Below are positions 1,606 through 48,475 of a stretch of 64,000 nucleotides of DNA, piece after piece. The notes below the pieces were generated by a model. The model did no database searches and had not been told where the DNA came from. It was given only the letters and a program-made list of their open reading frames with translations. Source of the DNA: Mizuhopecten yessoensis (taxonomy: Eukaryota); contig NW_018408787.1 of the NCBI RefSeq assembly GCF_002113885.1, positions 775,319 to 839,318 of the forward strand. Reading direction: 5' to 3'. Every line of letters starts with the position of its first letter. Within the stretch, counting starts at the first letter, position 1. Made by a program: the position numbers and the translations under genes.

Positions 1606-3192
1606 ATGCCAAGACGAAGGCTTCGGTCCCCTAGGACCAGGGTCCGATATGATTCACCAGATGATTGCTGTACCGGATGCTGTGCTACATGCTGCTGTTG
1701 CTGTTGTTGGAGCCGGGCGATGGTTGCGAGAAAATCAAGAATCAAGATGTTGTGGATGTATGTACTTATGATTGGACTTGTCATTGGTATAACGATAGGT
1801 GTTGTCTTCTATGGAAGCCTGTTCACTGATATTTCTGCATCAGACATGAAAGTGATAGACGGAAAGTTATCACATTTATTCTGCGATAGTGTTAATATTG
1901 ACACAGCTAATCCTACAAGTGACTTTGCCCCTTTTTCTGCATATATTGTGGGAACTCCACTCAAAATAGATCCAACTCACAAAGAAAATTATGGATTTCA
2001 ATTGAGTTTTGATTTTCATCAGCCATGGACATATGCTACCCGCCAGTTTTATCTACTGTCAGGGTCATCGGCCAAACTGTTTTGTCCTCAAGTTACTGGC
2101 ATCATGGGTGTTGTCATTATCAAAGGTCAGGCAAATTATACAGAATTTATACAAGATTCACCTAATTATCAATGCGTTGGATGTGAGTACGCACATGTTA
2201 TCTATAATGAACGACATTCTGGACCAAATTCCTGGACATTTTCTGACACTGATGAATACTTCTTTGTATTTATTGGTCAGGAATCATTGTGGGCATCGTG
2301 TGAACTTGATCTTACCAGGACAGCATACAAAACTGACATCAGTACATCCTCTTGCTACAAGGTAACCACTTGTGAGTTTAGTCTTGGTCTAGAAGAAAGC
2401 AATCCCCCCAAACAGATTATAGTGAAACTGGAGCCTGATAAGGTTGCGTCGGGTAAACGGTACATGTACTCGACCACGTCTATCCAGTCCACCTGTGTGG
2501 CCAGACTGTGGGTCTATATTGTCCTGTTTCTGTGTTGTCCAGGAATTGTTTGCATCATTTTAAGTGTACTTATCTACAAATTTTGTGCCGACCCTGTAGA
2601 AGATGATGATGATGATGATGATGATATTTCTGATGAACAGTCTCCGTTGCTATGGGACAGTGCCCCTAGTTATTCTGGAGTTGTGGTTACAGAACCTCCT
2701 AAATACGAGGACATAATGGCAGATAATGACAATCAATTACCTAGCTACGAAGAAGCTGTTGCATCCGGAACTTTTCCAGCAGGAAATTATGGAGCTGTAG
2801 GAAACGTGGGTATAAACCATTCAGAACCATTAAGGAACACTGATGTCCCTGTTAACCAGGCAGACAATCTGAGACATGTCAGCATCATTGATGTTGGTGC
2901 TACCAGCCGTGGACCTAATCAGGAGGCTAATGAAACAGATAACACCCAGGGACCTGAGTCTCTTAACAACTTCCCCGAAGTGTCCAGTAGTGTCAACCTC
3001 GACCAGACCAGCCGTGTGCTTGTGATGAATCTGTCTGATGATGTCCATACAGATGACCTTGTATCGCCCAGTGATGACCTTGAACCGTCCAGCAGTGACT
3101 TTGACTCCGACTCGTCTGACAGTGCCGATAGTGTTATCATAGACGATGGTTCAGAACAAGTCAGAAATACCTCTACAGATACGAGGAAATAG
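1606..3192 (+). CDS. APD1-4-like (DUF4792/4793-type) two-TM membrane protein with PY-motif tail, paralogue 1 (~528 aa)
   Basis: The ORF track starts at 1549, but a splice acceptor (CCTCCAG, AG at 1586-1587) precedes ATG 1606; candidate donor AAG|GTATGA at 1090. Order of features: Cys string CCTGCCATCCCCCCW, TM1, luminal domain with SASDM..LFCDSV and FYLLSGS..IIKG..DEYFFV, TM2, poly-Asp, EQSPLL, PPKY, LPSY, then a long acidic/Ser tail. Confidence 0.85.
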   Translation: MPRRRLRSPRTRVRYDSPDDCCTGCCATCCCCCCWSRAMVARKSRIKMLWMYVLMIGLVIGITIGVVFYGSLFTDISASDMKVIDGKLSHLFCDSVNIDTANPTSDFAPFSAYIVGTPLKIDPTHKENYGFQLSFDFHQPWTYATRQFYLLSGSSAKLFCPQVTGIMGVVIIKGQANYTEFIQDSPNYQCVGCEYAHVIYNERHSGPNSWTFSDTDEYFFVFIGQESLWASCELDLTRTAYKTDISTSSCYKVTTCEFSLGLEESNPPKQIIVKLEPDKVASGKRYMYSTTSIQSTCVARLWVYIVLFLCCPGIVCIILSVLIYKFCADPVEDDDDDDDDISDEQSPLLWDSAPSYSGVVVTEPPKYEDIMADNDNQLPSYEEAVASGTFPAGNYGAVGNVGINHSEPLRNTDVPVNQADNLRHVSIIDVGATSRGPNQEANETDNTQGPESLNNFPEVSSSVNLDQTSRVLVMNLSDDVHTDDLVSPSDDLEPSSSDFDSDSSDSADSVIIDDGSEQVRNTSTDTRK

Positions 3193-3383
3193 TTCTGCAG
3201 AGACAGGTCCTGAGCAATTTTTATTTATTTATGAAACTGAGCAGTAGAAGGGAGATAACTTGTTATATATAATAATTCTTGTTATGCCTTATGGTTTAAA
3301 TGTTGTTTCTTAAGTTGAGATCGAAAAATATCAAAAAGATTTAGATGTGTTAATGTTTTGCATATAGTTGACATGGGGTTGCA

Positions 3384-5010
3384 TTTTTAGCTCACCTGGT
3401 CCGAAGGACCATGGTGAGCTTATGCCATACCGCAGCGTCCGTCGTCCGTCCATCAACTTTTCCTTTAAAATGTACTAGTCCTGAACGGCCTAGTACATTT
3501 TGACTAAATTTGGTCTTGAGTATCCTTAGGCCAAGGGGACTCAATTTTGTATAAACGGTGGGTGTGGCCCCCCTGGGGGCAGAGGGGCGGGGCCCAGTAG
3601 GGGAAATAGAGGTAAAACCTTGAAAATCCTTCTTCTCCCGTAGGGATTAAAGAATTTTATCCTTATTTAGTCTGGAGCATCCTTGGGCCAAGGGGACTCA
3701 AATTTGTATAGACGGTGGGTGTGGCCCCCCTGGGGGCAGAGGGGCATTGCCCAATTGGGGAAATAGAGGTAAAACCTTGAAAATCCTTCTTCTACCGCAG
3801 GGATTAAAGGATTTTATCCGAATTTAGTCTGGAGCATCCTTTGGCCAAGGGGACTCAATTTTGTATAAATGGTGGGTGTGGCCCCCCTGGGGGCTAGGGG
3901 ACGGGGCCCAATAGGGGAAACATAGCAAATTATTCTTTAAAATCCTTCTTCTTCTGTAGGAATGATTTTTTTTACCATATTTGGTCTGAAGCATCCTTGG
4001 GTGAAGGGGAACCAATTTTGTATAAAACATGGGTCTGGCCCCTCAGGGGCCTGATGGGCGGGCCCAATAGGGGAAACATAGCAAATTATTCTTTAAAATC
4101 CTTCTTCTTCTGTAGGAATGAAAGGATTTGGTCCATATTTGGTGTGGAGCATCCTTGGGTAAAGGGGAACCAATTTTGTATAAACGGTGGGTGTGGCCCC
4201 CTCGGACCTGAGAGGCGGGGCCCAATAGGGGAAATAGAAGTAAAACCTTTATAATCCTTCTTCTACCATATGGATTGAGGGATTTTATCCTAATTTAGTC
4301 TGGAGCATCCTTGGACAAAAGGGACTCAATTTCTTATAAACAGCGAGTGTGGCCCACCTGGGGACAGAAGGGAGGGGCCCAATAGGGGAAACATAGCAAA
4401 TTCTTCAAATACCTTCTTCTTCTGTACGAATGACAGGATTTTGTCCAAATTTGGTATGAAGCATCATTGGGTGAAGGAGAACCAATTTTGTATAAACGGT
4501 GTGTCTAACCCCCCTGGAGGCAGAGAGGCGGGGCCCAATAGGGGAAATAGAGGTAAAACCTTTAAAATCCTTCTTTTACCATAGGGATTAAGGGATTTTA
4601 TCCTAATTTAGTTTGGAGCATCCTTGGGCCAAGGGGACTCAATTTTGTATATGCAGTGGGTGTGGTCTCCCAGGGGGCAGAAGGGCGGGGGCCAATAGGA
4701 GAAAGAGAGGTAAAACCTTTTAAATCCTTCTTCGACCATCGAAATAAAGGGATTTTTTCCATATTTAGTCTGGAGCATCCTTGGACAAAGGGGTCTCAAT
4801 TTTGTATAATTGGTGGGTATGACCCCCCTAGGGGCATAGGGGTGGGGCTCTGTTTGAAGTTTGTTCTGCTTTATCTCAAGTACTGGATGGATCTTTCTGA
4901 AATTTCATATGTACTTACAGCACCTACCATGGATTGCTATATCTTTACTTCATACTAATTATTTTAAACATATTCAGGTGAGCGATACAGGCCTTCTGGG
5001 CCTCTTGTTT
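3384..5010 (+). mobile_element. Non-autonomous Helentron-type element (HINE) carrying an internal ~157-bp tandem array (~8-9 units)
   Basis: 5' end TTTTTAGCTCACCTG with a short palindrome and a (GTCC)n-like microsatellite. 3' end CAGGTGAGCGA (4975-4985), hairpin AGGCCTTCTGGGCCT, then CTTGTT in a T-rich site. The unit GGCCAAGGGGACTCAATTTTGTATAAACGGTGGGTGTGG recurs every ~157 bp. Confidence 0.85.
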
Positions 5011-5099
5011 TTTATTTTACAAAGGGAAAAATATTTAACATTTCAGAGACCTGTATTAATGTCTACACAGTTACCCCTCAAAAATACTGTTAATGTTAA

Positions 5100-5870
5100 T
5101 TAGCACACCTGCCAAAAGGATGTAACCTTCCATTGGGCAGAGGGACATAACCCATTCGGAAATATCACATACCAGGTACATGTAGAGGCAGATCTTTAAA
5201 GTCCTACTCCTTTAGTACAGGTATGGTGATTTATTAGGTATAATTAAGGATCTTTAGGCCAAGGGATTTAGTTTTATAAATGTATGTTAGGAGGAGGATG
5301 TGCCCTACCTGGGGCAGAAGAGTGTATTGTGATGGGGGTATATCTCTAAAAGTCGTTCTATTCTAACAGTTTGGCTGAAGGAATTTAACCGAACTTGGTG
5401 TAAGGTATTTGCTATCCCAATGACTGAATTTTGTATAAAAGAAGGATGTACATACTCATAGACCCTTGGGAGCAGAGGGACAGGGTCCATTTTGGGAAGT
5501 TAGCTTTTAAGACTACTGAAAAGATTTATTCTAATTTGGTAGAAAGGATCCATTGACAGAAGTGGACACATTATTTTATAAACACTAAGTGACAAAGTCT
5601 AACAGTGGTAAATGTGTAGAGGTGGAGGATTACGCCTTCAGTGGAGATGATTCCTTGGGTCAAAGAAGGTTTGTTAGACAAGATTATAAAGAGTGGGGAC
5701 ATAATAGTTCCAAGTATAACATAGGATATCGGCTAAAACAAAGTAATTGAACACCTCCATTGGTTCATTCCTCTTCATGTTAGCCTGAATTTATTTAGCT
5801 CTTTTGAAATGCTCGTGTTACAAAGTAATTTAAGTAAAGAGCAGGCTATGTATTCAGACCATAGGGCCTT
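5100..5870. repeat. Decayed remnant of a related HINE-type satellite
   Basis: Degenerate versions of the GGCCAAGGGATT..TTTATAAA and AATTTTGTATAAA motifs, with a similar layout to the adjacent element. Confidence 0.4.
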
Positions 5871-6368
5871 TTCTATCTGGCTATTTTATATATTAATACT
5901 ATTTTTTATTGTTAAATCAGATTTTATTTTCTTTGTGTTTGAATGATCAAACCATTTATTATCAATGTGGAAATTTTCTCTTTTTTTTAAATTTATTGCA
6001 TAAAAAATACCCTCCTCCCTATAGATAAAAAAATGTGTGAGTGCCTATTTTCTAGCTGATGGCAGTAATGTCAGAGGAAATGTTAGAGAAACATTCTGCA
6101 TTGTAAAATGTTACAGTTGATTTTGTCTGTGATTGCTTATTTTGTGATATTATTGATTTAAGGTCATCATTGTCATTGTAATTTGAACTTCATTATGACA
6201 ATCTATGTATTTGAACATTTAAAACAATATACCTGAACATTGATCAGATATGATTTAGTCAGTATAACAATTCAGACTTGAATCAGCCAGTCATTAATGG
6301 CATATATAAACAGTAGGTCTATATTACATTCAATAGATCATATGAATTATAGTCTTTTTCACCTGGAA

Positions 6369-6760
6369 CATCCTCCATACTCCAGGGGCTGAACTCACTA
6401 AATGCCCTCTGCACCCTTGGAACATGTCAAAGCCAAATTGTCAGCATGGGGCTAGCTATTGGATTTGTCTGGGTGAAAACACCTGACCGATCGGTGAAAA
6501 CACCTGACCAATCGCTAAGGCTGATTCCTGTCCTTTGAAGATTACAGAAGAGCTTCACCAAACTCCAAAGCCAGTCAATTTTACCTTACACTACCAAAAG
6601 ATTCTTGTTTAGATATGTATATTAAAAGATCAAACTAGTCTTTTTGTCTCATCCACAAGGTGGCACACATTGAGCCTTCAAAAACTAAATCTTGAGTGTC
6701 ATGACAAAAACCAGTGGTGCAGAGAACGTAAGTGGGTATAACCCCTGAGTATAGAGTATG
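6369..6760. mobile_element. MITE with perfect 9-bp TSD (Mutator-like)
   Basis: TIRs CATCCTCCATACTCCAGGGGCTGAACTCACT / AGTGGGTATAACCCCTGAGTATAGAGTATG. CACCTGGAA is duplicated at 6360-6368 and 6761-6769. Confidence 0.85.
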
Positions 6761-7677
6761 CACCTGGAATCATGAGTGCAGATAACCCATTCATTTACAT
6801 ATTCATTGATTTGAAAAAAAAAATGTTTTGTACATATTTTGAAATATATATCCTCATAGCGTAATTATATAAATGTAAAACACATTTAGGATCTGCTAGT
6901 ATGACTTAAAATTATTTTAATGTGCCTTTTATTGGAACATCCATAAATGAATAAAGGTAAACAAATATCTGGCAGAATTATCAGAGGTCACAGTGTTCAC
7001 CTTACCTGATCATACAAGCAAGGAAAAGGGTGAATTATTTTGCGTTGTCGGTGTTCACTGAAGAAAGGTCAGTTATGTACAAGTAGACCCTATCTTGAGA
7101 AAATGTTATGTTATGAAAGGTATATATGGTGGTTACCATATTGGTAAAAAAAGAACAATAAGAAAGTAAAACATGGAAATATGGTAACAGGTTTTTTCAC
7201 CATTCCTACATATTATACTTTAATTATATAATGTATAAATGTATTGTATTTGTAATCTTTATGCATCCTTACAGTCACTGCATCTAAAGGTACATTAAAA
7301 TATTGGTGACCAGGTATGGATCCTTTATTGATAAAAACAAAATAGAAAAAGAAAGAGAAAAAAATCTCACAGTTTCATGTTTAATTAATCCCAGGTCAAG
7401 GCACATCTAACAGAGTATGCTATGCATTTAAAAACCAGAAACTATGTCAGTATTCAGGTCAAAAATAAACAGATTCCATTTTGTAAGTGCACTTGTAGCT
7501 CTGTATATATAATACCTAACTTTATGCCAGTCTTAAGATTTACATTGCAATGCATAGGTGTATGTTTATTTATTATAAGATGCAGATTAGAATGGCGGAA
7601 TAGAACCTCGTAATTACAAGTAAATATAAGGTATGGAATCTTGTATTGAATAGATCTTTTAGGAAACATAACTCTTC

Positions 7678-8030
7678 TGTGACAGGAGAGGACAAATGTA
7701 CGATCAGACTGGGATTCGAACCAAGGGCCCTCAGATCTCTAGACGGAAGCTCTCCCAATTGAGCTACCTGGTCGCCAGCAAATGACCAAGCCCAATTCCA
7801 CTACACTCCTCCTCCCTCCTTTTTCGAAGTCTTTAACCATGTAAACATCATTATTTACAAACCAGTCTCAGGTTAGGGTATCCCCTTTCCAAGCATACAC
7901 CAAACGCTTGAAAAAAGTTGGCAAGCCCCCGAATGTATTAAAAGGAGGAAAAGAATGTACAGCCAGACCTGATAATTCGAATTGAAGACCCTCCAAACTC
8001 TTGACAGACGCTCTACCAACTGAGCTACCA
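7678..8030 (-). mobile_element. Miniature non-autonomous LTR retroelement (TRIM) with tRNA-like LTRs, Helenus-like
   Basis: Minus-strand order: truncated 5' LTR 8030-7934 ending ..ATACA; PBS-like TTCGGGGGCTTGCC; ~95 bp spacer; PPT AAAAGGAGGGAGGAGGAG (7824-7806); 3' LTR TGTAGTGG...TGTCACA (7805-7678). Both LTRs contain an A box (TAGCTCARTTGG) and a B-box-like TTCGAAT. Confidence 0.75.
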
Positions 8031-8125
8031 AAATAGTAACAAATTTTTGCAGAAACTTTAATAAAAGTTAAAATGTTGGAAATGTATGCTAAAACAACTC
8101 AACATTTTTGGGAGAATAACATTAG

Positions 8126-8380
8126 CATACTTGCCAACCATCCCTATTTAGGTGGGAGACTCCCAAATTTCGGACCCTTAAATTTCGCATTTTCAACCAA
8201 TGAATTTGCTAAACTATTCCTACATACAAAGGTATAATGATTTCATCTGAAAGAACAACTCAAAATATGACTTTGAAAGGGTTATTTTGTCTCTGGGGGT
8301 ATACACACACATTTTATAGGTTTTAATTTAGAGTGTGCTGAATCTCCCAAATGGAAATTTCAAAATGTTGGAAAACTATG
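8126..8380. mobile_element. Possible non-autonomous DNA transposon
   Basis: Imperfect TIRs CATACTTGCCAAC / GTTGGAAAACTATG. No clear TSD. Confidence 0.4.
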
Positions 8381-9589
8381 GATAATTTATTAGTTTAATC
8401 AGCAATATGTAATTACTGTGCATCCTAAATATAGCATGCCATTCAAACATTGTCACTTAGGCAATATGTTCCATGATCATGAAAACCTTATCTATGCTAA
8501 TACATGATTTTAAATGTATAAAGCTATCAGCAGAGGATTTTTGTAAGTCCTATATAACCGGAATTAACTTTGTGTACTCAACATCAGCAGATCAGGGCAA
8601 TATATATATATGTGTAGTAATTCTTGTTTAAACAGAGCAATGCATAGTCTAGGAACTCCTATAAACCGGAACTACAAATTATCATTGATCCAAAAACATA
8701 GATGTTCTTTTAGACATAGATTTTGGTATATAATGTAAGATATGTTTTGCATTAATTGACAAAGTTGACTTGGAATTCAAATATCCTTCATTCGCACACA
8801 CTTAACATCTTAAACACTAAACAGGGATATTGAAATTGCTTTTGTAAGGAACTTGTTTGTGAATTAGTTTTATTGATACATCTATATAATTAAAGACAGC
8901 AGAGTCTAAAGAACAACAGGAACGATCGTCTAGAAGAATCCTTATTTGATCTGTCATGTAGTGCTAGCACAATACACGATTTATTAGCTTATTACTGAAA
9001 CAACAAATAAATCATCTAGTGTTTAGAAATATGTTAAAGACAAGCCAAGGTCACTACCACACTCACCGAAAAGGTCGTAAATTCATAATACGTTATAATT
9101 TCACTTTGTTGAGAAGATACATAGTGCCAGATTTTGTTTACATTAAATACATTTTGGATATGATATAGACATATAATGTAATATTAACACATTTGTATAA
9201 GTACAACATATGAAAGTAGAATATTTGTTCACTTCCATATAATTATTTTAATCATATTCAGTGTTCATGACCCGTTTATCCATGTTTATTAAAGGAGAAA
9301 AAAACAATTAACTATTGAATATTTGAGAGAAGATCAAAATGTTCACACTGAGTTTAGAAGTAGGAATAACATAAGACATACTGTACAGCACTACTCGTTT
9401 ATATACATTTTAGTACTGTATTGCAACATTTGAAGTATCAAGCAATCTGTAGGAACGTCATCAAATGTTTTAAACTTGTTCTCACAATTAAACTCCACCA
9501 CGAGGTAAATGTTTAGTCTAAGTCACACATTTACATCATTTAAATTATCAATATTTTCAGCCAGTAGATACATATACAATGTAAGCATG

Positions 9590-9940
9590 CAACTACGTGG
9601 GTATGTAACTGATATACCTTCACATATATGAACTAACGATGTGTATTTACATGTTTATATTGTCCCCGTGCATTCGATTGACGTACCTACACACGTGCAT
9701 GTGACTGATATAATCCACGTGTATGTGACTGATTTAAGTTTATGTGATCGATATAAACCACGTGTGTATGTTACTGATATAAGTACACGTATGAATGAGT
9801 GATGCATCTACACATGTTAATATCGCCCGTGTGCATGCGATTGGCGTACCTACACACGTGCATGTGACTGATATAATCCACGTGTGTACGTAACTGATAT
9901 ATGTGCACGTGTGAATGAGTGATGTATCTATATATGCTTA
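9590..9940. repeat. Degenerate minisatellite with an internal larger duplication
   Basis: Recurrent CACGTG..TGTGACTGATATA. The block CGTACCTACACACGTGCATGTGACTGATATAATCCACGTGT occurs twice. Confidence 0.6.
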
Positions 9941-10743
9941 TGTAATGTAAAACTGTTATAAAATCATCTGTTTGGCAATGATTTTAAATGATATCTTATT
10001 TGTACATAAACAACATATTACTACGCTTTGGAACCAGCTGGTATTTTGTAAAGCTAGGACGAGATTAACGGTACGTTTTATTGACAGGTTGTCATTCTGT
10101 CTACATCCCTATGACTGATCACAGGTACTTGGCGTCATACGATGTAAAACAAATAAGCCAAAGAAAGGCCCTTTTATTTTCCTTCATTCTAGATTTTGTT
10201 ATTTGGAATTGCACCTTTTTATCCCCTTTCATCACCGATAAGTTATAGAAGGGCAAAACAGATGTATGGTGCAGTGTAATTCGGGTTTTTTGGCAAACTG
10301 TATCATTTACCAAATTTTGCACCAATCAACTTGTGTGTGTGTGTGTTACGTTCTATCTGAATGATGTTAGTACACACACGGGTGGAGTAACGTATTATTA
10401 CATGATATGACTCTGATGTAACTGTAGACGTGAACGTATGGTTACGTGTGTTTTATGTAAAAGTGAGTGATTTTGTTTGATTAAAGACTGGTATTATTTA
10501 AATATTAAATATCTAGCCTCTCAAGTCTTTCATTACCAATGTACATTACTATTTATGTTATGTTTTCAATCAAATAAATACTGATAACTTCGTCTAAATT
10601 GTTTTCGGGGTTCATTAATTTGGATTAGAAGTATACTATATATAGGTACAAAATGTATCCGAGGAGAGAGTAGAGGGGTATCAAATTGCCTAGGAATTTC
10701 CAATTGAAGAAATCATGAAACAAAATGTGTATGAAGAAAAAAC

Positions 10744-11211: not shown

Positions 11212-13620
11212 GTTGTTATAATAATTTATGTTCTGGTGAATGTATATTATTATGATAATTTATGCTCTGGTGAATGTATATTGTTATGATAATTTATGTT
11301 CTGGTGAATGTATATTGTTATGGTAATTTATGTTCTGGTGAATGTATATTATTACGATAATGTTCTGGTGAATGTATAATATTATGATAATTTATGCTCT
11401 GGTGAATGTATATTATTATGATAATTTATGTTCTGGTGAATGTATATTGTTATGATAATTTATGTTCTGATGAATGTATACTGTTATGATAATTAATGTT
11501 CTGGTGAATATATATTGTAATGATAATTTATGTTCCGGTGAATGTATATTATTACGATAATGTTCTGGTGAATGCATATTATTATGATAATTTATGTTCT
11601 GGTGAATAGATATTGTTATGCTAATTTATGTTCTGGTGAATATATATTGTAATGATAATTTATGTTCCGGTGAATGTATATTATTACGATAATGTTATGG
11701 TGAATGTATAATATTATGATAATTTATGTTCTGGGCGAATGTAGATTATTATGATAATTTATGTTCTGGGCGAATGTATATTATTATGATAATTTATGCT
11801 CTGGGGAATGTATATTGTTATGATAATTTATGTTCTGATGAATGTATAATATTATGATAATTTATGTTCTGGGCGACGAAGTGATAATTAATGTTCTGGT
11901 GAATATATATTGTTATGATAATTTATGTTCTGATGAATGTATAATATTATGATAATTTATGTTCTGGGCGAATGTAGATTATTATGATAATTTATGTTCT
12001 GGGCGAATGTATATTATTATGATAATTTATGTTATGATAATTTATGTTCTGGTGAATATATATTGTAATGATAATTTATGTTCTGGTGAATAGATATTGT
12101 TATGCTAATTTATGTTCTGGTGAATGTATAATATTATGATAATTTATGTTCTGGGCGCATGTAGATTATTATGATAATTTATGTTCTGATGAATGTATAA
12201 TATTATGATAATTTATGTTCTGATGAATGTATAATATTATGATAATTTATGTTCTGGGCGCATGTAGATTATTATGATAATTTATGTTCTGGGCGACGAA
12301 GTGATAATTAATGTTCTGGTGAATATATATTGTTATGATATTTTATGTTCTGGTGAATATATATTGTTATGATATTTTATGTTCTGGTGAATATATATTG
12401 TTATTCTAATTTATGTTCTGGGGAATATATATTGTTATGCTAATTTATGTTCTGGTGAATATATATTGTTATGATATTTTATGTTCTGGTGAATGTATAT
12501 TGTTATGGTAATTTATGTTCTGGTGAATGTATACTGTTATGATAATTTATGTTCTGGTGCATATATATTGTTATGCTAATTTATGTTCTGGTGAATGTAT
12601 AATGTTATGGTAATTTATGTTCTGGTGAATGTATAATATTGTGATTTTTTATGTTCTGATGAATGTATAATATTATGATAATTTATGCTCTGGTGAATGT
12701 ATCTTGTTATGATAATTTATGTTCTGGTGAATATATATTGTAATGATAATTTATGTTCTGGTGAATATATTCTATTATGATAATTTGTGTTCTGGTGAAT
12801 GTATATTATTACAATAATGTTCTGGTGAATGTATATTATTATGATAATTTATGGTCTGGGCGAATGTAGATTATTATGATAATTTATGTTCTGGGCGACG
12901 AAGTGATAATTAATGTTCTGGTGAATATATATTGTAATGATAATTTATGTTCTGGTGAATAGATATTGTTATGCTAATTTATGTTCTGGTGAATATATAT
13001 TATTATGATAATTTATGTTCTGGGCGAATGTATATTATTATGATAATTTATGCTCTGGTGAATGTATATTATTATGATAATTTATGGTCTGGGCGAATGT
13101 AGATTATTATGATAATTTATGTTCTGGGCGACGAAGTGATAATTAATGTTCTGGTGAATATATATTGTTATGCTAATTTATGTTCTGGTGAATATATATT
13201 GTTATGATATTTTATGTTCTGGTGAATATATATTGTAATGATAATTTATGTTCCGGTGAATGTATATTATTACGATAATGTTATGGTGAATGTATAATAT
13301 TATGATAATTTATGTTCTGGGCGACGAAGTGATAATTAATGTTCTGGTGAATATATATTGTTATGATATTTTATGTTCTGGTGAATATATATTGTTATTC
13401 TAATTTATGTTCTGGGGAATATATATTGTTATGATAATTTATGTTCTGGGGAATATATATTGTTATGATAATTTATGTTCTGGGGAATATATATTGTTTT
13501 GATAATTTATGTTCTGGTGAATGTATATTATTATGATAATTTATGTTCTGGGCGAATGTAGATTATTATGATAATTTATGTTCTGGTGAATGTTTATTAT
13601 TATGATAACTAATGTTCTGT
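11212..13620. repeat. 34-bp minisatellite array (~70 units)
   Basis: Unit ATAATTTATGTTCTGGTGAATGTATATTATTATG with recurrent variants. Confidence 0.95.
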
Positions 13621-14235
13621 TTTATGTATATTATATGATATGATTTACTTTGTTATTGACATTTCCGTAATGAGCAATGAGAGGAACGTATTTTCACAAA
13701 TAAATTCCTTTGGAAAACACTGTTGTAGCATCCTTGAAATTACAACAGACACATTTTACTACCAAAACAGTAATAGGTGTGTTTTGATTTTTCTGAAATA
13801 TAGTTAATTTATATTATGAGTCGACATCATAAGTATTACGCATGGTGTAGATGACGTTGATTATCATATCTACGTAGTTTATATCCATATACATGTAGAT
13901 GGTATATAAAAATATATATCTATGGTTAGAATCATTTATTAGGTAAACCATAAATTGTGACATATTATGAAAATAATACAAGTAAGTGTTGTTGTATCTC
14001 CAGCTCTGTAGAATTGTTGCTATATCAATGTCACGTGAAAGAGATTTTGTATCAGGAAATGAAGCTATAAAATTTAAATATAAAGTGTCAGGTATCTGTT
14101 AGTTGTCCAGGCTACATTCTCTGTGCACTCTCTTACGATTCTGATGCTGTTAACTGGCTTTGGATCGGCGTTTCTCTTACCGTCTTTATTTACACAACCT
14201 TCCTGTATTTGCCAGGTGTTCTGTGAGTAAATTCA

Positions 14236-14283: not shown

Positions 14284-16913
14284 ACTTTTAAATAACTCCA
14301 ATGCAGGGAATCGTTTAATACATGACAATGCCATAAGGAGTATGTCTGTTTGGATTTCCAACTCAAACGTTTCTCTAAAGTGTTTTATGTTTCATTACTA
14401 TTTTAATATTTCATCTTTTATTTTGACGTTTTTTTTGTAGCGTATTTCTGAAACACTGCCCGAATAGTTGTTTTACCGTTAACATACCATTAATACATTT
14501 TTTTATTTTCTTATACAGTTCTTATAAACAGCAACAATCGCTTACTGCACCTGTCGTGTTGCTGTTGTTAAATGTCAATTTCGCTATTAGCTTGTAGATT
14601 TATTATGAGGTTTTGCTGTTTAGGTGTCGACGATGACATCCTTCATTTTTTTCCATCGAAACCCCTTATATTTCTACTCAGATTTTTTTATATTATTATC
14701 TTATAATTATCTTTCAGTAAATTGTACAGCGTTTCGACCTATTACTCCGCATGCCAAAATGAAGAGGGACTCATTTTTAAAGTGTTATTTGGATGTGACA
14801 TGAGCTTGTCAATCACAGCTGCCGACATCTTACATGTAGATATCTATATTTGACTCAAAGTGACAACGACGTTCCGAAAGAAAACAGTTGAATTAAAACA
14901 ATGCCGATGTATCATAGGATTCGGAAGCATGGGTATTAAACCCTCTTGTAAAATATTTATAAACAAACATCATCCCAAACTCTTTACTACTAGCTATTGT
15001 TTGATTAAATATGGCGTATAGAATATATTACCCCAGCCACGAGTTAATGAAATGATCTTAAGTGTAAAATTGTCCCAAATTTTGACTTTGCCAATCACAA
15101 ATAACATTATGAAAAGTACAATCATACGTGACAATTAAGACTACTTTATGATCCCGGGTCCAGGAGGATTGATATTAAGAAATGACAAGTTGTTGTAACA
15201 ATGGAGTAACATTTACATACATTTTGTTGAACAAAGTTTGGCTTGATACTCTTCAGTCATTAACTATGACTTGACTAAAAAGGTGGCATGGTGTGGTATT
15301 CGAGTGAAAATATAATAAGCAATGGGAGATTGGTTTAATTCTGAGGTTTTGACGCATGACTACACTTTTCAGGAATGGTGATACATGTAAGTACGGATAA
15401 ACGTCACTATCCTATACTCAAAGTGTTTTGTTCTCACATCATGTGATACTTTTCACATTGTGAAATAACCAACGCAATATTCCATCAAGCTTGATTAAAA
15501 ACATTTTGACCCGCTGTGGGATAGACGTGTTTTTCCATATACATTGTTTACTATCTGACAGCTGTTCGAGGTCACACTATAACACACGTCTAACTCGCGG
15601 TGAAGATTGGCTATATTCACTTACCATGTAAATATCAGCTGACTATGACCGTATCGCCAGTCACGAGACCTTTATACTTTGTAATCAAGTACTATTACCT
15701 GATACCGACAGTACATAACGCATCTCGTATCCTGATATAATTATGTTTATATAGATATAGATTTACTTTAGGACTTTAACACTTGTATGTTATTAGAAGT
15801 TTATTGATGTGCTCTAGGACCTTAACACTTGTTTGATATAAGAAGTACTTTGAAATACCTTGAAACTTTATAAGGTACGTGATATTTTTCTTCAGGTTTT
15901 GAGTTTTAAAATCAATGTATAAGTATATACATTATGTTACACCTTTTAAAATAATAATGATGTGGAATTCTAATTGTTTTTATTTAGGTGTGATTTGATA
16001 AGCTTGGGGTGTATTGTTTTGGATGTTATGTACCTTTTTCTATCTCGCCAGAAATATTAAATTGCCCAACATTTTCTCATACTGGAGATGCATCACATGA
16101 TAAACAAACATGAATTGGGTCAAGTCTGTATGCCGTCTATCACAATGACGTAGTTCGTATAGGAAAGTGTAATTAAAAAATGTTATTGCCGAACACAATA
16201 ACAACTTTCTGTGAATCTGTGCAATTCAATGGCATGGTGCCCTAAAGTAAACTTAGCTGTATAACTTCTGTGATACCTGTAATACAAAAAACGTGTTTAC
16301 ACCGAAGGTAAACATGTGATGAGACAAATATACTGTCGATTAAAACACTTTCACTGAACATGCTAATAGTTTATGTAACATTACTTGTATATTATCAGAT
16401 ATAAATACAGTTAAACGTATTGTTTTTGTAAGGATTAAGACACTTACAGAATAATGCTGACACAAATTTTAAGGACGGGATATATTCTCAGGCAACGGTT
16501 TTATAAAGTTTTGTCTTTCCATATTTAATATGACGAGAATTATATTTTGAAAACTTTCATAACTTCTACCGAAAAGAAGCTATCAGGGGCATATTCTGCA
16601 ACACCCTAACCTGGCTTACTCCTTAAGTATATGACATCTTATCTACTCACAAACATACATATTGTTACCGACCATCAGTAGGTTATACTAGGGTAGATGC
16701 AAGTGGTGTCTAACAAGTGGTGTCTAACTCATTCAGTTCATGACGACAAGAGATGTGCCATCGAGTTGTGCACTGTTGTATGTTCATATACTTGTATAAA
16801 CATTCCTTTCTGTGTATTTTTTGTACGTCATATATCATATTATGACTAATAGAGTAATATTTTGACACTCACATAAGTTCAGAAAGTATGTTTCTGTTGT
16901 GTAGGGGTGAATC

Positions 16914-18122
16914 ATGGTACATGGTGGAGGGGCCTGTTCTGGAGGAGGAGGTGGCTACAGCTCAGGTGTTTTTATGTCCACCAACAATTACTCTCACTTT
17001 GGTAACGGCCGTGGACACAGGAATGAAGATTGCGAAAAGTGCATGGGAGGTATATGTCGTTGTATCGCAGTTTGTGTCTGCTGTGTGGGTCAAGGGTATT
17101 TTAAGACAATATTGATATTCTGGACGTGGCTAGTAGTGTTGTCACTTATCACGGGATTGTCAGTGGGTCTCGGGAGATTCGGTCCTACCGACATCCAAGT
17201 CAGTCCTTCAGACATGATTCAAATGAAAAGAGGGATCGACCCGGTTCTGTGCGAGGGCGTAAACGTCCAAACCACCCTCCCTGTTAGTACATACCTTCTC
17301 CCATCAGCTCCAGTCGTTACGTCAGAGCGTGTGAACTATTCCTTTAACGAAACAGCACTTATCGCCCATGACAGGTACGAGTACTGGGGTTTCTACCTAA
17401 TTGCTGGTTCTGATGTGGACATTATAACCTGTTCACCCTTCTATCGCACCCTTTATATAATCAAAGGGGACGGACAGTTCAATAATTGGAAGAATGACAA
17501 TACAGATTCCGATAATAGTCAGGTGCAACACACAATAGGCGGGTGTTCTTATCCGCAATACCACAACACAAGGATTTCGTACCACATCGGGAGCACGGAA
17601 GAGTATTACTTTGTCGTTGCCAATGATGGGCACAGAACGGTGGATGTCAATATTTTGTTCAATCTTAGGCGTGCTGTGTATGACTTGGGGGGTGATAAGA
17701 ACATCGTTTGCAGCAACTCTACGTCATGTAAGGTAAATTTCGCGGGAACTGGCTCTAATAGTGCCATCGTAGTGTACGTACCACATTCCGAAACATTTGA
17801 CTTTGTTATCAAGACAGATTGTTTATCACGCGTTTCTGTTTTTATTGCAATATTCCTGTTGATTCCTTTTACGGTGGGCAGTCTCTTTACTGCTCACATG
17901 CTGTACAAAAAACGTAAAGAATCGAACACTACCTCTATAGGGTCAGTGCAAAGGAGGGAACAACGGACATTTACATCCTATCCACCCGAATACCAGACAA
18001 TGCAACGCGAGGCGGAACCAAACGGGAAATCGCCACCCCCTCCCTACGGTTGCCATGACGATGGGCTAGCTGTAAAACCTCCCACCTATGAAGAGGCCGT
18101 CGGACGAAGTGGAAGAGTGTAG
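16914..18122 (+). CDS. APD1-4-like two-TM membrane protein with PY-motif tail, paralogue 2 (402 aa)
   Basis: Acceptor TTTCTGTTGTGTAG (AG 16903-16904) lies 9 nt before the ATG; candidate upstream donor AAG|GTACGT at 15875. Features: MVHGGGACSGG start, Cys cluster, TM1, SPSDM..LCEGV, YEYWGFYLIAGS..YIIKGD..EEYYFVV, TM2, and a tail with PPEY, YQTM, PPPPY and PPTY. Confidence 0.9.
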   Translation: MVHGGGACSGGGGGYSSGVFMSTNNYSHFGNGRGHRNEDCEKCMGGICRCIAVCVCCVGQGYFKTILIFWTWLVVLSLITGLSVGLGRFGPTDIQVSPSDMIQMKRGIDPVLCEGVNVQTTLPVSTYLLPSAPVVTSERVNYSFNETALIAHDRYEYWGFYLIAGSDVDIITCSPFYRTLYIIKGDGQFNNWKNDNTDSDNSQVQHTIGGCSYPQYHNTRISYHIGSTEEYYFVVANDGHRTVDVNILFNLRRAVYDLGGDKNIVCSNSTSCKVNFAGTGSNSAIVVYVPHSETFDFVIKTDCLSRVSVFIAIFLLIPFTVGSLFTAHMLYKKRKESNTTSIGSVQRREQRTFTSYPPEYQTMQREAEPNGKSPPPPYGCHDDGLAVKPPTYEEAVGRSGRV

Positions 18123-19046
18123 CATAAGAAATATCTCCTGAGCATCATAAGATGGCGGCGCTGGTAAATGTGACACAGATAGAGTTGGCCCCAGCCCACA
18201 TTGAACAGATATCCGGTAAATGCAGGATATATGTAAAATATTTAACTTTCCAATGCCGCTAACTAAAGTAAATGAATGAGGCTGAGAAAACCCCGTTAAT
18301 ATAATACAGTGTATATCAGAGACGTATAATATGTATTATACGTCTCTGTGTATATTTATTATTCATAAATTGAATTTGGAGTATGATTCGAACATTTTGA
18401 AAGTTTTAGTCTTTGGAAAATAGTCACTTTAAAGACATCCTTATATCACAACTCAACATAAAATGATTACACAAAGTTTGTACAATTGTATATAGCAAAC
18501 ATTATTACTTTGATACTTATGTATATATATATACTACTGTTTTAGTATTGAACATGTCTCTTATGGCATGTGTCTCCTGTTACAGGTACACGTAACTGTT
18601 ACAAGGGGAGAAACAATTTATTGTAATTGAGAAAATTGTTTGTATAATTTTTCACATGAAACACTGAAGACAAAAACGGGAATTTAAGATTTTAATGAAA
18701 AACCGGTAACTAGTGATGAAATACACTATTTATATTGTTGATTGTTGTACCTCTTTTGAATATTGATGTAATAATGTTTAAATCATCAATTCGTATTTAT
18801 TTATTGTTGCTGCGGATCAGCTCGTCACATGAAAGGTGGTATCACAAGTCAGAATCGTGTGAGTGTGAGGATACTTTGTCTGTGCTGGCCTCCAGGCTAT
18901 GTCTGATCTGCTGGCCGTTGTTTGAAGCAACCCTTTTTTCGCATTACATTTACAGCAATTGCTAATCTTATCGTAGCTATTATAATTTGTAATTATCATG
19001 AACATATGTTTATACATGAATGCACTACAACACGTGTATGTAAGGT

Positions 19047-19275
19047 GTTATAAGCTTATTTACAAATTAAAAAAATGAATGATTTTTATGTGATATTTTA
19101 TAAGCTTATTTACAAGTAAAAAAATGAATGTTAATTATGTGATATTTTATAAGCTTATTTACAAGTAAAAAAATGAGTGTTAATTATGTGATATTTTGTA
19201 AGTTTATTTACAAATAAAAAATGAATGGTAATTATGTGATATTTTATAAGCTTATTTATAAATAAAGAATGAATG
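19047..19275. repeat. ~50-bp AT-rich tandem repeat, ~4.5 copies
   Basis: TATAAGCTTATTTACAAGTAAAAAAATGAATGTTAATTATGTGATATTT repeated. Confidence 0.85.
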
Positions 19276-22256
19276 CTGTTTTTGCGTTCCAGTGCCTTGC
19301 TATTATGAAAACATCTAGCAGTAATTGCTGATGCAATACCTCCTCCTAATCATTGCTTTCAATTATGTGTAAACCAAAGCACGTACCATTATCATTCAGC
19401 TGACAAGATATTTGTGTGTTTAAGTCTTATGAATTAGTCTTTAAGCGAAGCAATTCGTCTTCCCCAATCCCTTTGATGACAGATGACCATCAACACGGGT
19501 TCGTTATGAGGCAAATGATAATTGTCTTCGTATTGTGTAATAAGCAAAATCTTTCAAGGGATGGGCTGCATCCGCTATCAACATGTATCGAAACTTTTTA
19601 AGCCATATTTATAGAAATATAATTGTGTAGCATGCCGGTGTCGTACACCCGACAAAGCTGTTCAGCATATATATCAGCGAATCTCTGATACACAGTTTTC
19701 ATTATGATTGAATGTAATATTTTTCCACTTGGGACCTTTGGATGGACAAACATTGCTTCTTCAATGTAGAAATTACAGTCATCATATACTAACTTTTTAC
19801 CGGCGGGAATCCGTTAAGTTATGTATCACTTAATAACCGTGACATTCAAAAAGGACTCACTAAAATCTTTAGCAAACAAACTTGATGATGATTCAAGGGT
19901 GATAACTCTTACATAAATTGTGATAATTTCAATTGATTCGACACATGCGATGTCATGCCGTCATTGTCATTTATATAGATCGTACGTAATACAACACTAA
20001 AAAACGAAAGCACGACTTTAGAGACACATATAAGCACAAGTGCGAACTTTTATACATGTACAATTGTAAATAATCAAAATCACAGTAATCCGAATCAACA
20101 GAACTACAAGAATAAAACACTGGTGCAGCAACATGATTGCTAAGCGCTTTAGGAATGTCTCGTACAATCTTAACTCTTTTTTTTGCAGGCAAAGGCATAG
20201 GAGTATCATGAAAACGATATTTCCAGAAGCCAAAATGGCAAACGAATTTAATAATGATGAATTATTAAAGAATAGTTTAACTTTAATTTTAAAATCACTT
20301 CAATTAAAAAATACCCAATCAAAACTCATTTACAATTTGCAGGATCATTGTCTCTGAGAACAGTGATCTTGACGACTGATCAAGCTCCTGTAAATACTGA
20401 GGATCACCAGTACACCAGATGATCGTACTGCGGATTTATCAAACAGGTTACCCATGTAAAGAATATGACACTGGTGTAATGAGCTCTCTTTTTCAGTGTA
20501 TGACCGTACGGGTAGGTCTATCACATGCTTTATGAAATCATCCATATATTGTAGCTAGAGAACTGACGAGCATCAGCATTTGTTGTAATGTTAGGTCAGC
20601 TGTTTATAAAACCAATTGTTCATGATCACTTATGACAAAAATACACAGTTTCAGCCATCAATATTAATACGATCTCCTCTCTTCTCGTCAAGATCAATAA
20701 CTAGACAGATCCTTCCCGTTTTAAAACAATATTTTCCCGCTATAATGTTTTGAAATATTGGAATCTGTGAACATGAATCAATTCTGCTACGAAACGCAGG
20801 TGATTGCATTAGGGACATAACGTTTAATTACAAAAAACAGAAACCCAAGAAGCATCATAGCGCATCGGGTTGGATGTTGTGACGTGGGCGTGAAACAAAT
20901 ATTGAATTATACACAGGAGAGATTCAGACACATTGGTGTCTTGTTATCAACAATCAATTCAAGATCAACAGGAAATGTATTCCTAAAGCGGTAAAGTAGC
21001 AATAATAATACGTCCCGTAAAACATTACACTACTAGTATATGTAATAAACAAACAATACTATAGTTTGGTCATGATGTCGAGAAAACTGTTAGCTGATTC
21101 AGTGAGGTTTAATTATAAACACTATTATCTGTTTGCTAGATATATTACTCTCGTATAAAGTGTCCATATTCAATGGTATATGTAACCTAAAATGGTCGTT
21201 TCCTCCACTATCTAATCAGGTGTATCACTTGCATCCTGTACCGACCGTCTTTTGTCCACCTGTGACTTTTTCGGACTGTCGTTGTTTATAAACAACGCGG
21301 TAGACTTGTTTTGCTATTTCACTACAATATTTCTGTTATAGCGAGTATAAGTTTCCCCCATATATGTTAATGGTTAAAAGATCGTTACGCTTAAAAGATA
21401 CTGCGTTATATGACTAGGTGTAGTGATACAAATACATGTAGCTTCTTAGTCAAGCGAGACCGACAAAAGCGATGTATGCTATGTACGTTTAGCCTGTCAG
21501 TATCATCGACATTTGTGTCACTATATAGGAGGTTCATTGTTTACGGTTTCTATTGAACACATTCTCAGTATTAAAATGTTAGTTACCAGATCGTAGTTAC
21601 GGTAACGTTGGTATTTCCTTATAACAAAATCGATTTCCAAACGTGTGTACAAGCTAACCAGTCATACAAAACAACTAACCGCCAGTGAATAGCGTCAACA
21701 AAGCGGCCATGTTTACCACCAGATCCGGTGTACTCAGTTTATAAAGTTATATCCAGTGGGGAGGATAAGGCTACACGTCGGTGGAGAAGGATTCACACGT
21801 TATGGTATACACCACCTGAAGTGGACTACGCTTTATTGTGATATAAGTGACAACAATCAACACAGGTATGTAATCCTTATCTGGACATGTGTTACCATTT
21901 GATATACCTGTGAATTGTAGTCATATGCATAAGATGTACACATAGTTCTTTACATACTGTACTGTGAAGCTAAATATAGACTGTCGTCATGCAATGGCCG
22001 AAATATTCTTCCTGAATGAGTACATGCTATAAATAGCATAGCGTTTAACCAGTTTGTACTGAGAAATATATACTGTATATAATGAATTATATACATTGTT
22101 CATAGGAATTGTACACTAAGGTAGGCTGTTTATATACATGGTTCAACTGATATAGGTATGCTGTTTATACTAAAATATATATATGTCTATACTTAGCTAA
22201 ACATTTCATACGTAGGAAATTTTTATATATGAATACCCTAGATAATGAGATATATG

Positions 22257-22422
22257 CAGTGGCGGATCCAGAGGGTTTTTTTGGGCTTCAGGAAAATCCC
22301 CCACCCTGAGAATTTTCTTTAAAAATCATGTATTTTCACCATTTTCCTCAATTTTTCCCTACATGGAAACCCCCCCAGGAAATTTGGAACCCCCCCCAGA
22401 TAGGTCTCTGGATCCGCCACTG
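22257..22422. mobile_element. MITE with CAGTGGCGGATCCAGAG termini (hAT-like), 5-bp flanking duplication
   Basis: Perfect 17-bp TIR CAGTGGCGGATCCAGAG / CTCTGGATCCGCCACTG, with ATATG on both sides. It lies in the probable 5'UTR intron of gene 3. Confidence 0.85.
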
Positions 22423-23004
22423 ATATGTATGTTGTTTTAACCTGAAACATGTATACAAAATGAATGTATTTGAGTCACATCATGCTTTTTTGTTTGTTGC
22501 TTATTCATTACGTATATCATACGCTCTAACGAGGTCCTTATTTGGTAAATGGGATTTTAATACTGGTATATATTTTTGACAAAATCATTAACAACAGAAA
22601 ACATATATGAATACATTGTAAATTATCAATGTTGATTTTGCATGGTTTGGAACGTCTTATCCCATAATGATAAATATTACTTTCGTTATACTGACAAACG
22701 ATTCCATTGTTATGAATATCAAATTTGCCTTGATTCGTGATCGATTTCTAGGATTTATGTTTAGGGATAGGAATATAACTTTTAATTCCTATCGGGGACG
22801 GGGGCCAATAATGTCATTGTTTTTGTTTTGTTTACAATGTCTCCTCAATGCTGTTATATACAGTGTTTTTCATTTTTACCTTTCATAATGCTTATGAAAA
22901 TATCAATCAAACTTACATGTCAACATCAAAAATCAATATATCCTATACTGATTGTTTATGTTTTAACAACTGATACAATGATATATTTCGCTGTCAGGTT
23001 GACC

Positions 23005-24186
23005 ATGGTTCACGGCGGTGGGACCTGTTCTGGTGGTAGTAGTGGAGGATACAGCAGTAATCACACATACGTATCTACTACTCACTTCCGTCACAACGAC
23101 ACGCCAGGCACACCACTAACCTGTGACGACTTTAAGCGATGCTGTCTGTGTCTTGGTCTGTGTTTTGGATGCAGAGGCAAGAATAACTTCCACAGGATAT
23201 TCAGAATTTGGGGATGGATTGCGGTCTTGTCTTTAGTGACAGGTTTGGCTGTCGGATTTGGGAAATATGGTCCTACTGCCATCCCCGCCAGCCCTTCAGA
23301 TATGATCCCTTTGACACACGGGATTCACTCGTCCTTTTGTGAGGGTGTAATAGTTGATACAACATTTCCTGTTAATACGTACCTCCTACCATCACCACCT
23401 ATTGTGTCGACAAGACAGGTGAAACACACCATCAATCAGACGGCAGTAGTTGTCAGGAATAGGTATGAATACTGGGGATTTTACCTGCTTTCTGGCTCCA
23501 AAATAGAAATAGACATTTGTGGGGACAATGACGGGGATTTGTATCTCATCAAAGGTGATTCCAAATTCAGCTCGTGGAAGGAGGATAACTATGACCCCGG
23601 GACATACAAAAAGACTGTACGTACAAAGTTATGTAAATCACCATCCCATTCCAGGACTAGACTAACCTACAGTGTCGCGCTCACTGACGAGTTCTACATA
23701 GTTTTAACCAATCATAACCGCCACCCGTTGAGTGCTAGTATCACATTCAATATAAACCGTGCAGTGTTCGTTTTAGGAGACGGAACAGAAGTTTGCCACA
23801 AGTCCCTGAAGTGTCACGTCGACCTCTCGGGAGATAATGCAGACGGATCTATTGTGGTCTACGTACCAGAATCTGATGATTTTGACTTCGACGTCAAAAC
23901 AGTGTGTTTACGGCGTTCTTCGGTGTTCATTGCTATATTTCTGATCGTACCCTTGGTTATAGGACTTCTAATAACAGGATATCTGGTTTACATAACACGT
24001 AGATCTAACTCACTGATCAGATTCGTTTATAAACGTGAAAATCACCCTCTAACATCTGTCCCGTCTGCTACCCAATATCAGACGCTTGACAATGATACAC
24101 GAACCGAGCCATCTGCTCCATCCTACAGCGACGAAATGGAGGCCCCGCCTTCCTATGATCAGGCAGTAAAGTTACAGCATAGATGA
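23005..24186 (+). CDS. APD1-4-like two-TM membrane protein with PY/PSAP tail, paralogue 3 (393 aa)
   Basis: The track start at 22828 is probably intronic. Acceptor CTGTCAG (AG 22996-22997) precedes ACCATGG at 23005, which gives MVHGGGTCSGG and aligns with paralogue 2; candidate donor CAG|GTATGT at 21866. Features: YEYWGFYLLSGS, two TMs, and a tail with YQTL, PSAPSY and PPSY. Confidence 0.9.
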   Translation: MVHGGGTCSGGSSGGYSSNHTYVSTTHFRHNDTPGTPLTCDDFKRCCLCLGLCFGCRGKNNFHRIFRIWGWIAVLSLVTGLAVGFGKYGPTAIPASPSDMIPLTHGIHSSFCEGVIVDTTFPVNTYLLPSPPIVSTRQVKHTINQTAVVVRNRYEYWGFYLLSGSKIEIDICGDNDGDLYLIKGDSKFSSWKEDNYDPGTYKKTVRTKLCKSPSHSRTRLTYSVALTDEFYIVLTNHNRHPLSASITFNINRAVFVLGDGTEVCHKSLKCHVDLSGDNADGSIVVYVPESDDFDFDVKTVCLRRSSVFIAIFLIVPLVIGLLITGYLVYITRRSNSLIRFVYKRENHPLTSVPSATQYQTLDNDTRTEPSAPSYSDEMEAPPSYDQAVKLQHR

Positions 24187-48470: not shown

Positions 48471-48475
48471 AACAT

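Follow-up and report, generated by a model that had tools for sequence, protein, structure and literature searches.

Three tandem scallop genes for two-pass APD-domain membrane proteins with PY-motif tails, candidate partners of NEDD4-family ubiquitin ligases

We analysed a stretch of 64,000 nucleotides (nt) of DNA from the scallop Mizuhopecten yessoensis (hereafter the window), which carries three intact paralogous genes, A, B and C, on the plus strand, each with one coding exon in the list of open reading frames (ORFs) of the window. Their products share the APD1-4_N/APD1-4_M module with the plant APD1-4 proteins; to this module the plant proteins add a C-terminal RING, while the scallop proteins have PY motifs ([LP]PxY) instead. 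This combination of architecture and motif is real, well conserved and undescribed, and the genes themselves are already in databases as uncharacterised. The explanation that in our view accounts best for the evidence, and to which we give slightly better than even chances, is that the three proteins are lophotrochozoan two-pass, PY-tailed and suicide-adaptor-like partners of NEDD4-family ligases.

The three genes and the architecture of their products

The original prediction, an earlier reading of the same DNA, had proposed a trio of same-strand paralogues here. The ORFs, together with tblastn, find the three genes where it placed them.

1606-3192, + strand: gene A coding sequence, 528 amino acids (aa), in a frame that opens at 1549; a long acidic Ser-rich tail extension follows the PY motifs
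16914-18122, + strand: gene B coding sequence, 402 aa
23005-24186, + strand: gene C coding sequence, 393 aa counted from the conserved MVHGGG start, in a frame that opens at 22828

As judged by tblastn, B and C are 40% identical (expectation value, E, 2e-92), and A is 22-25% identical to B or C (E 1e-13 to 1e-15); the same search detected no further copies or fragments of the trio genes in the 64-kb window. We rejected the possibility that A, B or C is a pseudogene or a chance ORF, given the intact frames, the conserved orthologues and the high profile scores (gene A, listed as P0010, reaches 367.9 bits on the family profile). An identical copy of the gene B protein is encoded on NEDP02005460.1 of assembly GCA_002113885.2, the reference genome of the Yesso scallop, Mizuhopecten yessoensis. 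Orthologues of gene B are LOC132563314 of Ylistrum balloti (62% identity) and LOC117342453 of Pecten maximus (57%), and gene C has the orthologue LOC132563318 in Ylistrum balloti. RefSeq models in other molluscs are collinear with the coding sequences of the trio from Met1 to the PY tail.

All three proteins match the Pfam family APD1-4_M (PF16041, gathering score 25 bits), with 37.5 bits for A (E 3.1e-9), 50.9 bits for B (E 2e-13) and 41.3 bits for C (E 2e-10). B and C also match APD1-4_N (PF16040, gathering score 27 bits), with 35.6 bits (E 7.5e-9) and 38.6 bits (E 8.5e-10), respectively. Gene A gave no APD1-4_N match at E <= 1, yet it aligns with B and C over that region in tblastn. Among 118 relatives scanned with Pfam, 117 match APD1-4_M and 98 match APD1-4_N. 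These profiles place A, B and C in the APD1-4 domain family, and their homology to the plant APD module is real; the guess of an APD-like domain in the original prediction was thus correct, the matches lying above the gathering scores.

In each protein a pair of strongly hydrophobic segments, separated by about 220-240 residues, can be recognised; we take them as transmembrane (TM) segments TM1 and TM2. The main features of this architecture are the following.

1666-1707, + strand: gene A juxtamembrane Cys cluster, 10 Cys in aa 21-34
1750-1806, + strand: gene A TM1, aa 49-67; hydropathy peak 2.42
2518-2574, + strand: gene A TM2, aa 305-323; hydropathy peak 3.04
17097-17177, + strand: gene B TM1, aa 62-88; AlphaFold2 helix at 62-88, hydropathy peak at 66-84
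17178-17831, + strand: gene B predicted luminal or extracellular beta-sandwich, aa 89-306; conserved C113, C173, C211, C266, C272 and C303, and three N-x-S/T sequons
17832-17906, + strand: gene B TM2, aa 307-331; AlphaFold2 helix at 307-343, then basic YKKRKE
23197-23262, + strand: gene C TM1, about aa 65-86, by hydropathy
23917-23979, + strand: gene C TM2, about aa 305-325; hydropathy peak 2.87

The proposed order of a Cys-rich N-terminus, a TM segment, a luminal domain, a second TM segment and a tail was recovered, with the TM segments placed by hydropathy in A, B and C, and by AlphaFold2 for B. In the 118 relatives, the count of Lys plus Arg at TM1 is 2.46 in the N-side flank versus 0.77 on the other side, and at TM2 it is 3.12 in the C-side flank versus 2.08 on the other side. 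Cys makes up 18.7% of the 27 residues before TM1 and 0.6% of the tail, and six Cys are conserved in the domain between the TM segments, each in 91-115 of the 118 relatives. The tails are predicted to be cytosolic, and not luminal, because of this positive-inside bias, the distribution of Cys with its six conserved inter-TM residues, and the KKRK directly after TM2. Taken together, the data support a predicted N-in/C-in orientation, with a luminal or extracellular domain that would be disulfide-bonded and could be glycosylated.

The cytosolic Cys cluster is probably palmitoylated; that of gene A gave a weak CYSTM match in Pfam (E 0.002), which is under the cut-off. Many members of the family have a second hydrophobic, Cys-rich segment ahead of TM1, which could be a re-entrant or in-plane element.

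The motifs that had been singled out in the luminal domain, S-x-S-D-M...C-x-x-V, YEYWGFYL..GS, IIKG/LIKG and [DE]E[YF][YF]xV, are all found in the three proteins, with the YEYWGFYL..GS block degenerate in A. We modelled the full gene B protein with AlphaFold2, using an alignment of 118 sequences. The model has a predicted local distance difference test score (pLDDT) of 83.9, with an all-beta domain at aa 92-305 above 90; its tail is disordered except for a short helix at aa 392-400, right after the last PY motif. Modelled in isolation, the domain (about 215 aa) reached a pLDDT of 94.9 and a predicted template modelling score of 0.89. In both B and C the protein begins with MVHGGG-x-CSGG (aa 1-12; 16914-16949 and 23005-23040), a segment that hardly varies among proteins of the B/C subfamily and more distant members, is absent from gene A, and is predicted with moderate confidence by AlphaFold2 (pLDDT 76).

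A Foldseek search with the gene B domain found no close structural relative in the PDB. The top matches were the GOLD domains of p24/TMED proteins (5azw, 5gu5 and 7rrm; E 3e-4 to 7e-4), with template modelling scores of 0.58-0.76 by target length and 0.32-0.36 by query length, 9-14% identity and about half of the domain covered. Other jelly rolls and carbohydrate-binding modules score little worse. We dropped a GOLD assignment of the luminal domain, since the coverage is confined to half of the domain and other jelly rolls fit nearly as well. The p24/TMED receptors also differ in layout: they are single-pass type I proteins with a signal peptide and a short COPI/COPII tail, whereas the proteins of the trio span the membrane twice, lack a cleavable signal and have tails of 65-205 aa. 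A PDB sequence search with the family profile returned TM-segment noise only (E >= 0.08).

PY motifs of the tails and the search for a RING

The tails of the three proteins carry the following motifs.

2695-2760, + strand: gene A PY pair, PPKYEDIM (aa 364-371) and LPSYEEAV (aa 378-385), 14 aa from start to start
17982-18101, + strand: gene B tail motifs, PPEYQTM (aa 357-363), PPPY (aa 375-378) and PPTYEEAV (aa 389-396)
24115-24168, + strand: gene C tail motifs, APSY (aa 371-374, non-canonical) and PPSYDQAV (aa 381-388)

The endings LPSYEEAV, PPTYEEAV and PPSYDQAV are therefore present in A, B and C as originally reported. They correspond to an extended motif, [LP]PxY-[DE]-[EQ]-A-[VL], of the type found in Comm and PRRG4. 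In Drosophila Comm the extended form reads GLPSYDEAL and is critical to the function of the protein; its counterpart in PRRG4 is GLPSYEQAV (PMC5578492). Gene A has an APSY (aa 353-356) upstream of its PY pair, and its PPKYEDI...[LP]PSY arrangement is also found in its orthologue P0028 and in Patella, Mya and Dreissena. A YxxPhi signal overlaps the PY motif in PPEYQTM of B and in PPKYEDIM of A. We considered a LAMP-like YQT[ML] as a feature of the whole family and rejected it; only 12 sequences closely related to B and C have it, which makes it a trait of a subfamily at best.

In 10 scallop sequences the terminal P-P-x-Y shows no variation. In the 118 relatives, drawn from a library of representatives at 50% identity, the terminal PY column has P in 98 and Y in 96 (about 81%). 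We then took a census of the tails among the best 150 of 1058 representatives, 117 of which have a tail of at least 30 aa past the last TM segment. [LP]PxY occurs in 88 of these 117 tails, and 63 have two or more copies; shuffling the tails 200 times gave a mean of 7.3 PY-carrying members and a maximum of 15. The density of PY motifs is 1.68 per 100 aa in the tails versus 0.02 in the rest of the proteins, an 80-fold difference. The Tyr of the motif is followed by [ED][ED][AV][VTMI], and the median distance of the last such Tyr from the C-terminus is 10 aa. Within the final pair of PY motifs the spacing is mostly 12-15 aa, with a mode of 14, a distance that suits engagement of tandem WW domains. 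The invariance in scallops, the conservation in relatives and the excess over shuffled tails indicate that the motifs are not due to chance. PY motifs have been kept in the orthologues and across Mollusca and Annelida, as the original prediction needed them to be.

No RING family of Pfam matched A, B, C or any of the 118 relatives. A RING pattern was likewise absent from the six-frame translation of the 64-kb window, on either strand, and from a protein set that included the best 150 representatives. The RefSeq models of Pecten, Ylistrum, Mya, Dreissena, Haliotis and Patella all stop with the PY tail, as does the Owenia protein record; a RING exon further downstream, to which the transcripts might be spliced, is thus seen neither as a RING ORF in the 64 kb nor in the models of these seven other species. 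Since A, B and C are without a RING, they are not expected to be E3 ligases themselves: they would not be APD E3 ligases, and we expect no intrinsic ligase activity. The description of the proteins as RING-less therefore stands, by both Pfam and pattern, but the property is not special to the trio. It is common to every animal member seen (the 150 best representatives, the 118 scanned with Pfam, and the insect and crustacean matches listed, 120 of 147), and appears as the general animal state. A word-index search with the 118-sequence alignment gave 12 matches, none of which was from a plant or RING-bearing.

The family in other animals and the surroundings of the genes

A full HMMER profile search over 1.84 billion representatives gave 1058 matches at E <= 1e-3 and 570 at E <= 1e-10. 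Taxon names were obtained by cluster look-ups of 30 proteins, of which 11 could be named. The named PY-tailed members come from Pecten maximus, Ylistrum balloti, Mya arenaria, Dreissena polymorpha, Haliotis rufescens, H. cracherodii, Patella vulgata and the annelid Owenia fusiformis, that is, from bivalves, gastropods and one annelid, and all of them are annotated as uncharacterised. We found no account of animal members in the searchable literature; the literature found for DUF4792, DUF4793, PF16040, PF16041 and APD1-4 consisted of plant papers. The family is thus undescribed, as had been supposed.

The relationships within the family were analysed with a quick IQ-TREE run, with support from the Shimodaira-Hasegawa-like approximate likelihood ratio test; the tree is unrooted and was built without plant or RING-bearing sequences. 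B and C form sister clades (support 99), each with three orthologues in other scallops (supports 99), and the duplication that gave rise to B and C is therefore older than the split between these scallop genera. In Ylistrum, the orthologue of B and that of C have near-consecutive gene numbers and each lies on a contig of 548,089 bp, which suggests a conserved tandem pair. Gene A pairs with its orthologue P0028 at support 100, in a clade that is distant from B/C and lies among gastropod and bivalve sequences. As PY motifs are present in almost every clade, including the distant clades of A and of B/C, the PY tail is old within the family.

The insect and crustacean relatives form a separate clade (support 100). 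A search with one arthropod member gave 147 matches, all of them unnamed or called "putative conserved plasma membrane protein". Like the trio, these arthropod APD-like proteins (some annotated as "DUF4793") have the same pair of Pfam domains, two TM segments and no RING, and are uncharacterised. At 450-1200 aa, however, they exceed the trio in length, and extra sequence is inserted between their N and M modules; unlike in the trio, TM2 forms the C-terminus, which leaves neither a cytosolic tail nor a PY motif. In the survey of homologues for RING versus PY that the original prediction had called for, PY motifs prevail in the tailed proteins and no RING was seen; the survey also brought up this PY-less and tail-less form. 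The arthropod form (P0086-P0155, P0169 and P0196-P0307) usually ends TM2 with ..FAFQ and is apparently pan-insect. In some arthropod models the protein is fused to the product of an adjacent CWC27 or cyclophilin gene, probably as an artefact of annotation.

Upstream of the three coding sequences there are sites that resemble splice acceptors.

1570-1587, + strand: splice-acceptor-like site of gene A, a pyrimidine run with AG at 1586-1587, 18 nt 5' of the ATG
16890-16904, + strand: splice-acceptor-like site of gene B, ttctgttgtgtAG, 9 nt 5' of the ATG
22985-22997, + strand: splice-acceptor-like site of gene C, tttcgctgtcAG, 7 nt 5' of the ATG

A contig of 2284 nt from another scallop-like source (L002) has the same 10 nt before the ATG of gene B and diverges beyond them. 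The acceptor-like sites and this match are weak evidence that hints at an intron in the 5' untranslated region of gene B; the intron is not established. Non-coding 5' exons of A and C may be inferred only, from the acceptor-like sites.

The window as a whole is AT-rich (GC content 0.25-0.43) and contains several satellites. Between genes A and B lie a 157-bp satellite in 8.6 copies (3506-4848) and a 34-bp satellite in 72 copies (11216-13640), the latter with a GC skew of up to +0.5, and a 38-bp array of 10 copies (24522-24911) follows 3' of gene C. On the minus strand, 34911-36482 is an intact single-exon ORF of 523 aa for a leucine-rich repeat (LRR) transmembrane protein (LRR_8, E 1.4e-50, and LRRCT), with a signal-like N-terminus, one TM segment and a short Tyr-rich tail. 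It resembles a typical invertebrate LRR receptor, and we found no link between this gene and the APD-like genes. The plus strand carries broken retroelement ORFs at 39640-41502, one with an RVT_1 match (E 8.3e-10) and its neighbours without a Pfam match; they are probably a decayed element of the type without long terminal repeats. A satellite block at 47301-53669 consists of a 42-bp unit in 28 copies followed by a 47-bp unit in about 110 copies (93% matches); it has a GC skew of down to -0.64 and long spurious ORFs on both strands, and it abuts a gap of N at 53670-54114. A further N run is at 56305.

Possible roles of the trio and competing explanations

PY-bearing membrane adaptors determine which membrane proteins are destroyed by ligases of the NEDD4 family. 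To our knowledge such adaptors are few, namely Comm, PRRG4, Ndfip and Shisa-like proteins, together with Bsd2, Tre and Ear1/Ssh4 of yeast, and the luminal part of most of them has little structure. Like the trio, Comm and PRRG4 have a cytosolic tail with two or more PY motifs (one canonical motif in gene C), of which the last is extended, while the rest of the tail is poorly conserved. They are, however, single-pass proteins with small or Gla ectodomains, whereas the trio has two TM segments and an APD-type beta-sandwich of 215 aa. Ndfip1/2 and yeast Bsd2 are endomembrane proteins that, like the trio, carry PPxY/LPxY, with several close-set PY motifs, but Ndfip has three TM segments, N-terminal PY motifs and no sizeable luminal domain, and is not homologous to the trio. 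Tre1/Tre2 and Ear1/Ssh4, which are integral-membrane PY proteins as well, provide a precedent for a PY adaptor with a folded recognition domain (transferrin-receptor-like in Tre1/2, SPRY in Ear1/Ssh4); they differ from the trio in being single-pass and fungal, have other folds and are not homologous to it. None of the Comm, Ndfip and PRRG families of Pfam matched A, B, C or the 118 relatives, and WBP-1 matched weakly in 2 of the 118 tails. The likeness to Comm, Ndfip and PRRG is thus presumably at the level of the motif, and convergent.

The PY motifs in Comm are necessary for Nedd4-dependent ubiquitination of Robo1 and its lysosomal routing (PMC12101832), and those of Ndfip are needed for Robo1 degradation (PMC6913780). 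Ndfip1 and Ndfip2 bind and activate Nedd4-family ligases, with clients that include Robo1 and DMT1 (PMC6913780). The yeast membrane PY adaptors Bsd2, Tre1/2 and Ear1/Ssh4 accompany their cargo when it is sorted to the vacuole, and are thus "suicide adaptors" (PMC6314561). From the sequence, the assignment of the trio as PY-dependent partners of NEDD4-family HECT ligases is well founded. The original prediction had gone further, and saw in the tails docking motifs for a HECT ligase acting in trans that replaced the built-in RING. The first part is supported, and through the extended Comm/PRRG4 motif the link is stronger than it had been put; the second part is a conjecture about the direction of change (the RING may have been lost or replaced in animals, or gained in plants), and the lack of a RING on which it drew is, as described above, not specific to the trio.

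We propose the following mechanism. Through their one to three class-I WW ligands, the tails would engage a HECT ligase of the NEDD4 family (Nedd4, Su(dx)/Itch or Smurf) at its tandem WW domains. The docked ligase would ubiquitinate the APD-like protein itself, along with whatever client the luminal or TM part of that protein holds, and the complex would be sorted through endosomes to the lysosome, as in the case of Comm, Ndfip, Bsd2, Tre1/2 and Ear1/Ssh4. The overlapping YxxPhi signals (YQTM/YQTL in B and C, YEDI in A) may aid endocytic sorting. Divergence of the luminal domains (22-40% identity) may give each paralogue different clients. We are fairly confident of the first steps, that is, of docking to NEDD4-family WW domains, self-ubiquitination and endolysosomal sorting. 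A true adaptor function, in which distinct clients are recruited through the luminal or TM part, is a more tentative proposal, and we would put it at somewhat below even chances.

Several observations weigh against this explanation. Canonical PY motifs are absent from 29 of the 117 tailed representatives, and the tail of gene C has one canonical motif only. The topology is derived from sequence statistics, and the hydrophobic segment before TM1 could shift the side of the N-terminus, though not that of the tail. The arthropod branch has neither PY nor RING, and the luminal module therefore has a function that is independent of a ligase. PPxY is, furthermore, also bound by WW proteins that are not ligases.

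The main rival is that the proteins are themselves the regulated cargo. The subunits of ENaC cross the membrane twice, have a large ectodomain rich in Cys and both termini in the cytosol, and carry at the C-terminus a PPxY that overlaps a YxxPhi signal and is used by Nedd4-2. It is possible that the scallop proteins are, in the same manner, receptors, lectin-like or GOLD-like cargo binders or adhesion proteins, whose PY and YxxPhi signals set their own surface level and turnover. Apart from the ENaC-like layout, this is favoured by the tail-less insect relatives, which show that the module works without a ligase, and by the luminal fold, which is nearest, weakly, to the GOLD domains of cargo receptors. 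However, ENaC subunits are channels of the unrelated ASC fold, and we found no match to ASC (ENaC/DEG) or to any other functional Pfam domain in A, B or C. The arrangement of several PY motifs and the exact Comm/PRRG4 motif are, moreover, typical of dedicated adaptors and activators. We regard the trio as regulated cargo as a real but minority possibility, about half as probable as the explanation we prefer. The two are not mutually exclusive, and the sequence fits regulated cargo as well as it fits an adaptor with a luminal recognition domain.

A second rival starts from the fact that PPxY is a general class-I WW ligand: the tails may form a scaffold for WW proteins other than ligases, of the Yorkie/YAP, Kibra, MAGI or WWOX type, and thus serve signalling and not degradation. 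The acidic-hydrophobic context of the motifs and the membrane-adaptor layout are, however, best documented for the Nedd4 family, and we have no other evidence for a scaffold, which makes this explanation improbable. That the stop codon is bypassed by splicing to a downstream RING exon, so that the proteins would be true APD-type E3s like plant APD1-4, which are transmembrane RING E3s with substrates that are unknown and with V-ATPase and Rab interactors that implicate the endomembrane system (PMC13210498), is close to refuted by the lack of a RING in every frame of the 64 kb and in all 118 relatives, by the models of other species that end at the PY tail, and by the position of the PY motif at the very C-terminus.

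Returning to PY-tailed partners of NEDD4-family ligases, the plant and animal proteins allow a broader, and speculative, proposal. The APD beta-sandwich may be an ancient eukaryotic module for client recognition that was wired to ubiquitination twice, through a RING in cis in plants and through a PY-recruited HECT ligase in trans in lophotrochozoans, and that is left unwired in arthropods; we consider this rather unlikely. If it were true, the scallop trio and its mollusc paralogues would be diversified receptor-like suicide adaptors, each committing its own luminal or extracellular clients to lysosomal degradation, and they would give a hint at the type of substrate of the orphan plant APD E3s.

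The family pairs the best-characterised Nedd4-docking motif with a large and confidently predicted luminal domain. If the proposed function holds, it would constitute a new class of candidate degradation receptors in invertebrates, give a lead on the orphan plant APD1-4 E3 ligases, and be a natural example of one recognition module coupled to two classes of ligase.

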